Of a stretch of DNA of 64,000 bases, positions 54,536 to 54,628 are shown one piece after another. Both the position numbers and the translations under genes were made by a program. The notes under the pieces are model-generated. The model saw only the letters and a program-made list of their open reading frames with translations, searched no databases and had not been told where the DNA came from. The DNA lies in the IMG/VR virus record IMGVR_UViG_3300023257_000007, positions 1 through 64,000 of that record; one strand, 5' to 3'. How positions within the stretch are numbered: position 1 is the stretch's first letter; each line of letters begins with the position of its first letter.

Positions 54536-54546
54536 AAGGAGATAAT

Positions 54547-54576
54547 ATGAAATAGATTATTAGAGGACCCACGTAA
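54547..54576 (+). other. Amber-interrupted minigene MK*IIRGPT* with a strong SD
   Basis: AAGGAG at 54536-54541, 5 nt before ATG AAA TAG ATT ATT AGA GGA CCC ACG TAA. Confidence 0.5.
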
Positions 54577-54628
54577 GTTGTTGTCAACACAAAAATTTAG
54601 TAAAACTAACAAAAATTAATTAATAACA

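Follow-up and report, generated by a model that had tools for sequence, protein, structure and literature searches.

A short phage leader ORF with an early UAG and an arrest-type Arg-Gly-Pro motif: comparative evidence suggesting a sensor of stop-codon suppression

In a giant phage found in salt-lake metagenomes, a nine-codon ORF with an unusually strong Shine-Dalgarno (SD) sequence carries a UAG at its third codon and then continues in frame through Ile-Ile-Arg-Gly-Pro-Thr to a UAA. Is this ORF a chance product of AT-rich DNA, a two-codon minigene, or a leader whose tail is translated only when the UAG is suppressed? The initial annotation had proposed the last of these, a readthrough sensor with a stalling tail that might control the downstream gene and the suppressor tRNA. 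Comparison with about 45 related phage contigs supports each sequence-level part of that proposal, with control of the downstream gene as the best reading. Ribosome stalling, the direction of control and the function of the downstream gene remain inferences, and an effect on the tRNA gene itself has not been shown.

The locus and its surroundings

The window analyzed here is a stretch of 64,000 nt corresponding to bases 85476-149475 of a single 344,634-bp contig with 25% GC and 35 tRNA genes. Near-identical DNA occurs in salt-lake and marine metagenomes; no RNA runs were found to hold this phage. The following features lie in this order on the + strand:

53411-53758 (+), pth2 (peptidyl-tRNA hydrolase 2), with a gating UAG at codon 3 (53417-53419)
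53755-54171 (+), an ORF of 138 aa
54164-54535 (+), an ORF of 123 aa, ending in TAA (54533-35)
54536-54541 (+), the SD-like AAGGAG, followed by ATAAT, 5 nt before the leader ATG
54547-54576 (+), the leader ORF, M K (UAG) I I R G P T (UAA), with its ATG at 54547-49, AAA as second codon, six tail codons at 54556-73 and the UAA at 54574-76
54553-54555 (+), the gating UAG of the leader, followed by a purine (ATT)
54562-54573 (+), an arrest-type core, Arg-Gly-Pro (54562-70) followed by Thr (AGA GGA CCC ACG)
54577-54586 (+), the 5' arm of a predicted anti-initiation helix (GUUGUUGUCA), starting at the first base after the leader's stop
54653-55123 (+), gene X, a conserved helical protein of unknown function; the start was chosen by alignment with relatives (MET...), and in-frame alternatives are 54629 and 54668
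54669-54678 (+), the 3' arm of the helix (UGACAACAAC) in the gene X initiation region
55154-55226 (+), a tRNA with anticodon CUA (amber suppressor), at the end of the same-strand gene row

The pattern AAGGAG-N5-ATG-NNN-TAG occurs once in the window and in 0 of 100 dinucleotide shuffles. The statement in the initial annotation that SD sites are rare is correct, as AAGGAG occurs 15 times on both strands of the window and genome-wide precedes only 6 of 424 long ORFs, with gene starts having A-rich, G-poor leaders. However, the strong SD is a feature of this phage and a few relatives only (7 of 43 leaders) and is not a family trait.

The genome otherwise uses the standard code. Coding density is 86.3% under code 11 and 87.1% with TAG read as sense, a gain of under 1%, and TAG ends 37 of 464 ORFs. 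In-frame TAGs other than in pth2 and the leader are C-terminal or lie upstream of a normal start, and no other clear in-frame TAG was seen in the genome. A third candidate ATG-NNN-TAG gene at 60446-61093 (minus strand) was rejected because it overlaps the end of the upstream gene and a normal ATG follows 6 codons later.

In pth2, which begins ATG ACG TAG AAC, the Pfam profile PF01981 (E 1.3e-8) aligns over positions 2-115 of 115, starting two residues after the TAG, and no other start codon is available. The tRNA was identified by ARAGORN and scores 60.9 bits against the Rfam tRNA model. It is closest to the phage's own tRNA-Trp, at only 71%, which did not resolve the amino acid inserted at UAG. 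No known Rfam family lies over the leader or spacer. Promoter-like sites are at background level, and the one hairpin, at 55131-55150, is terminator-like only for the minus strand. DNA contigs of near-identical strains show no change in 54536-54628 apart from one 2-nt deletion at 54606.

Gene X belongs to a family of 100-170-residue helical proteins whose short and long forms are linked by BLAST; a third, basic sub-family sits in the same position. No Pfam, PHROG or NCBIfam match was found. The AF2 model (pLDDT 83) is helical, but Foldseek against PDB gave no hit with E <= 0.001, and VIA-align gave only generic helical bundles (Z <= 5.7).

Conservation of the gate and the peptide tail

IMG/VR and JGI metagenome contigs were searched with the flanking proteins, giving 75 non-redundant pth2 loci (individual loci are denoted below by L and a number). 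In 60 of the 75, pth2 has an in-frame TAG 2-6 codons before the conserved KL(I/Y)V(I/V)TR(R/N)DL strand, following a leader of 1-17 codons (MT, MK, MKDT, MKDIEYNH and others), and the next codon is nearly always ATT or GTN. The initial annotation's parallel between the leader and pth2 is therefore right and goes further than was noted there. A tRNA-CUA lies within the retrieved DNA in 53 of the 75 loci, many of which are short contigs, and 80 copies were found among 112 loci when redundant loci were included.

On the pth2 strand, about 45 non-redundant contigs carry a mini-ORF of the form M-x(1-7)-TAG-[I/V]..R-x-P-(P/T)-stop, whereas the opposite strand gave only 9 loose, non-canonical matches. 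Examples are MK(TAG)IIRGPT in the window, MN(TAG)RKPP in L002, MP(TAG)VRPP in L004, MKET(TAG)IHIRPP in L010, MK(TAG)ISKSRGP in L011, MK(TAG)IRGPT in L078 and MKKT(TAG)ITIRAPT in L034, each ending in TAA or TGA. The usual gene order is pth2, leader, gene X, tRNA-CUA, with the leader 46-230 nt upstream of gene X in all loci; the window has two extra ORFs between pth2 and the leader. Interestingly, in the sub-clade whose pth2 lacks the amber codon (L016, L017, L022, L099, L102), pth2 sits directly behind gene X, under the gated leader. This suggests that the two ways of tying Pth2 to suppression are interchangeable. Published huge-phage records also carry the amber-gated pth2 (LR756500.1, LR756501.1, LR756504.1), and LR756501.1 has the leader MS(TAG)SRPP with an SD.

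To assess conservation independently of how the leaders had been found, a gene X profile was used and detected 46 copies in the retrieved loci. Of the 45 with at least 170 nt upstream, 38 have an amber mini-ORF by regular expression. By eye, the seven without such a hit, and two (L085, L098) whose hit was a chance ORF, also carry gated leaders that the pattern excluded. These comprise double-amber leaders (L086, MT(TAG)VKRLDGL(TAG)IIRGPP, and L083, L090 and L098), longer tails (L093, and L095 with an internal RGPP), L085 (MT(TAG)IFVPP(TAG)INNKSPPS), a TAG terminal stop (L017) and an ochre gate (L100). The double-amber leaders occur in one sub-clade, as expected for a steeper response to suppressor level. 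Short ORFs with early stops are common in 25% GC DNA, and ATG-NNN-TAG alone is expected many times per window. Nevertheless, a chance ORF without function is refuted by the comparative data, since the element is conserved in position, frame, peptide motif and paired helix across dozens of phages sharing only 30-70% protein identity.

The tail is selected as a peptide. Among 43 leaders the cores are RPP (14), RGP (13, of which 4 are followed by T), RSP (5), RAP (3), RCP-T (2), KPP (2) and single cases of RKP-P, RNP-P, RDP and KGP. Arg is encoded by AGA (31) and CGN (9), and Pro by all four codons. The codon after the gate is ATT, ATA, GTN or another purine-initial codon in 43 of 43, the tail has 4-8 codons, and the final stop is TAA (36) or TGA (7), never TAG. 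In published mutagenesis of RAPP-type arrest peptides, Arg and Pro are irreplaceable, and the middle position tolerates Gly best, then Ala, and partly Ser, Asp and Pro; RxPP with x = G, A, S or P was also selected from random libraries (PMC12992588). The A-site preference is Pro, then Cys, Thr, Asn and Ser (PMC7897499). The natural spectrum fits this set closely, including the window's R-G-P followed by Thr.

These observations also bear on whether the element is a bar-type minigene, in which a strongly initiated AUG AAA UAG would yield fMet-Lys-tRNA that drops off and ties up tRNA, with Pth2 and the extra tRNA-Lys genes as antidote and the in-frame tail irrelevant. SD, AUG, one sense codon and a stop appears to be the formal design of lambda bar minigenes, which the window fits; a peptidyl-tRNA hydrolase gene is linked, and the window holds two tRNA-Lys(UUU) genes. 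However, the codon before the gate is not conserved (AAA, TGG, CAT, ACA and others), the part before the gate is 2-8 codons long, most leaders (36 of 43) lack an SD, and the tail is conserved as a peptide and tied to a covarying helix. A bar-type mechanism needs none of these features and is considered very unlikely. A +1 frameshift reading of the minigene gave only a 23-codon ORF with no support in relatives; because pth2 is in frame with its ATG, readthrough rather than frameshifting is the common design.

A helix linking the leader's stop to the gene X start

The bases after the final stop have the consensus uGAUUAUUnUUUU and are the reverse complement of the bases before and into the gene X start codon (...AAAAUAAUAAUC-AUG), as seen by eye. 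Substitutions are paired; for example, L042 has ...AUUGAUUU / AAAUCAAU... and L045 has GAUUGUUUCU / AGAAACAAUC. RNAduplex of the stop plus 16 nt against the next 240 nt placed the best duplex on the gene X start codon in 35 of 43 loci, where about 5 are estimated to be expected from target size alone, with a mean z-score of -2.2 against shuffled arms. A small gene X sub-family (L065, L072, L076, L078, L079, L084) shows no such pairing. In the window, 54577-86 pairs with 54669-78 at -14.8 kcal/mol (z = -4.1), and the helix is present in both the MFE and centroid folds of 54530-54695; the same holds in L002 and L100. The 3' arm overlaps the ATG at 54668 but lies at +17 to +26 of the start favored by alignment (54653), which it would block less directly than in relatives.

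Covariation was tested on an alignment of 23 loci with a 14-bp helix. Of the cells, 86.1% pair, compared with 77.7 +/- 1.2 in shuffles (0/500), and 25 cells are changed on both sides, compared with 7.7 +/- 2.2 (0/500); slid registers gave 41-67% pairing. These counts come from related sequences and from a structure chosen after the duplexes had been seen. RNAalifold predicted no structure on the raw MAFFT alignment of spacers, and the helix is AU-rich and weak, with whole-region fold z-scores of -1.8 in the window and -0.9 and -0.4 in two relatives. Compensatory changes support the helix. Pairing of the tail with the SD is not general, as only L017 has a CCUCC-like tail. GGACA-N3-TGTCC hairpins occur in many relatives' spacers but are absent from the window.

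The helix begins at the last base of the final stop or the base after it. Given the established ribosome footprint and helicase position, about +11 to +15 from the P-site codon, a ribosome with that stop or the preceding codon in its A site must hold the 5' arm in its mRNA channel. The gate lies 5-9 codons upstream of the helix, including the terminal stop (22 nt in the window), and a ribosome released at the gate therefore never reaches the helix.

A natural swap and a model for suppression-gated control

L100 (Ga0114951_10003185) is a close relative of L101. At the position of L101's tRNA-CUA, L100 has a homologous tRNA with anticodon UUA, the only one among 81 suppressor tRNAs in 112 loci. 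In L100, pth2 starts ATG ACG TAA ATT and the leader reads M R H T (TAA) I I I R P P (TAG)(TAA). Both gates follow the anticodon, and the terminal stop moves to a codon the tRNA cannot read. This is one event, yet it is the strongest evidence that the gates are decoded by the neighboring tRNA.

Taken together, the element is best read, with moderate confidence, as the leader of a translational attenuator that senses stop-codon suppression. Ribosomes would start at ATG 54547, helped by the unusual AAGGAG, and meet UAG at codon 3. If release factor 1 wins, they would leave about 22 nt before the helix and gene X would stay closed. If the phage's tRNA-CUA reads the UAG, the ribosome would continue through I-I-R-G-P-T to UAA, and the nascent R-G-P at the peptidyl-transferase center would slow transfer to Thr or release at the stop. 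The ribosome would therefore sit on and melt the 5' arm, freeing the gene X start. With pth2 gated directly by the same codon, the cassette would thus tie two proteins to the activity of the suppressor tRNA. Suppression in vivo, the pause itself, and its turning gene X on rather than off are inferred from sequence. The nascent chain is only 7-14 residues, and a block of release by R-x-P has not been shown.

Two alternatives concern which signal is sensed. In the first, the UAG is simply a sense codon, always read by the co-expressed tRNA-CUA, and something else acts at the R-x-P-stop step, such as RF2/RF1 availability at the final stop, EF-P or Pro-tRNA. The tRNA gene lies in the same gene row, so the two may always be co-expressed; R-x-P-stop with TGA or TAA could report release-factor activity, and the phage carries its own RF1-type gene. 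However, purely sense use does not explain why the stop codon is kept at this spot in about 45 diverged leaders and 60 pth2 genes but nowhere else in the genome, is doubled in one sub-clade, is always at least 4 codons ahead of the helix, and switches to TAA together with the anticodon. This reading is considered unlikely. In the second, the element mainly reports host or phage RF1 activity, with tRNA-CUA as a constant competitor. Flux past UAG depends on the RF1 to tRNA-CUA ratio, and the RF1-type gene, outside the window, has a CTT-TAG-C +1 frameshift site that is conserved in four relatives and looks like an RF1 sensor. Sequence alone cannot separate this from the main model, as both inputs set the same ratio. 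The swap in L100 shows that the tRNA is the matched partner, and the leader always travels with the tRNA, although co-occurrence with an RF1 gene was not tested. This alternative is likewise thought improbable.

A broader reading is possible but tentative. Phages may carry a portable, self-monitoring suppression cassette of a suppressor tRNA, a peptidyl-tRNA hydrolase gated by the matching stop codon, a 7-14-residue leader gated by the same codon, and a downstream gene opened when the leader's R-x-P end arrests the ribosome at termination. This would be a natural sensor of the cell's genetic-code state, with the gate codon co-evolving with the anticodon (UAG with CUA, UAA with UUA), and would show that a RAP-type core can block peptide release in a chain too short to reach into the exit tunnel. 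The tRNA of this standard-code phage appears with its own read-outs, a possible damage-control enzyme (Pth2) and the RF1-type gene, making the early steps of phage code change open to experiment. The family also supplies dozens of natural variants of an R-x-P-stop peptide, and the cassette could report amber or ochre suppression in synthetic genetic-code work.

Arrest-peptide attenuators are known to sense secretion, antibiotics or amino acids. None reported to sense stop-codon suppression was found in the literature searched, nor was a leader gated by an in-frame stop next to a suppressor tRNA, or an amber-gated pth2. In stop-codon-recoded phages, code-change modules likewise combine a suppressor tRNA with a release factor gene (and an aaRS), and in-frame stops are thought to delay expression until the tRNA is made (Borges et al., bioRxiv 10.1101/2021.08.26.457843, which mentions neither Pth nor leader peptides). 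The present genome is not recoded, and only pth2 and the leader carry the gate.

The RAPP/RGPP-type arrest peptides (ApdA, ApdP, ApcA; SecM RAG/P) share the C-terminal Arg-x-Pro core next to the stall point, the residues allowed at the middle position and after the core, and a location just upstream of the gene that would be controlled. The leader is not a member of the RAPP/SecM families, however. It encodes 7-14 residues rather than 50-170, has no signal or membrane segment, and gene X is not a Sec/YidC component. The characterized peptides need Pro (or Gly) in the A site, whereas the window has Thr, only a second-rank A-site residue in ApcA and ApdP (PMC7897499), and most relatives have a stop codon directly after R-x-P. 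Access to the core is gated by an in-frame stop, and the element is found in phages. TnaC also ends in Arg-Pro-stop and pauses at termination, but has 24 residues, needs free tryptophan and tunnel contacts, and acts through Rho-dependent transcription termination, none of which is indicated here.

The prfB (RF2) autoregulatory site similarly uses an early in-frame stop codon to make the outcome depend on competition at that codon; here the outcome is readthrough by a dedicated tRNA rather than a +1 frameshift, and a separate downstream gene would be controlled through a nascent-peptide and RNA-helix relay. As in the drug-inducible attenuators (ermCL/ermC, catA86 and cmlA leaders), a very short leader ORF is followed on the same strand by a helix that hides the downstream initiation region, and a ribosome held at a defined leader codon would melt its 5' arm. 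Nothing suggests a drug as inducer, and the variable input implied by the sequence is decoding of the in-frame stop; the inducer would be a suppressor tRNA (or the tRNA to RF1 ratio). There is a single long-range helix rather than alternative hairpins, and, as the host appears not to use SD sites, the helix covers the start codon and its A-rich leader.

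Early amber codons in pth2 and hairpins in the leader spacers

The following features bear on the gated reading frames and on the DNA between the leader and gene X.
53411-53758 of the window (and loci L010-L102 of related phages): pth2, with an early amber codon
L066:3460-3536, L047:3457-3536 and L065:3409-3570 (examples from loci of relatives): spacers between the leader and gene X

The early amber codon in phage pth2 is itself a widespread conserved feature, present in 60 of 75 non-redundant homologues. Within one phage, the pth2 leader often mirrors the minigene leader. In locus L027, MKNT precedes the gating stop codon in both, and in locus L010 the corresponding leaders are MKDT and MKET.

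Many of the spacers between the leader and gene X in relatives hold GGACA-N3-TGTCC hairpins or palindromes, such as GCATGGACAcaaTGTCCATGC. These are often preceded by a direct half-copy, and about five occur in a row in L065. They may act as RNA hairpins or as protein-binding sites; they are absent from the window.

Other features of the window and genome

Three further features were noted within the window.
50150-52477 (+): 775-aa ORF just upstream of the pth2 and leader region
55226-57421 (-): row of small ORFs
27073-27541 (+): match to GOLLD RNA (RF02032), with the window's other 'tRNA-CUA' at 27140-27212

Judging from its translation only, the 775-aa ORF looks like a terminase large subunit with an insertion near its N-terminus. 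The small minus-strand ORFs all begin MxHLK(K/T/Q)(Y/F)... (MRHLKKYNEN, MKHLKTFKEN, MNHLKKYNEN, MKHLKQYESF, MRFLKTFEDF, MKTLKNWEQF) and look like a paralogous family. Genome-wide, strong SD motifs (AAGGAG or GGAGG) precede only a handful of ORFs, about 6-8 of 424, whereas starts in this genome otherwise have A-rich leaders.

The window's other 'tRNA-CUA' scores 45.4 bits against the Rfam tRNA model and has an all A-U acceptor stem. It lies inside a full-length match to GOLLD RNA (93.9 bits, E 7e-25, model positions 1-416/416), although this score is below the curated 150-bit threshold.

An RF1-type release factor gene with a TAG frameshift site

The same phage also encodes a release factor outside the window.
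G000:C1:34554-35241 of the phage genome, minus strand (locus L103, 1438-2125): RF1-type release factor gene

The encoded protein is an RF1-type release factor that lacks domain 1. NCBIfam profiles score prfA at 159 bits as compared to 92 bits for prfB, the PxT motif is present as PPT, and GGQ is present. The gene is split at TGT CTT TAG C and continues in the +1 frame. TGT CTT TAG CGG is conserved in four other phage contigs (L106-L109, 51-60% identity), whereas three further relatives (L110-L112) instead have in-frame TGA codons and no frameshift. The site in this phage is the exact analogue of the prfB CTT-TGA-C frameshift site, but with the RF1-specific stop codon.
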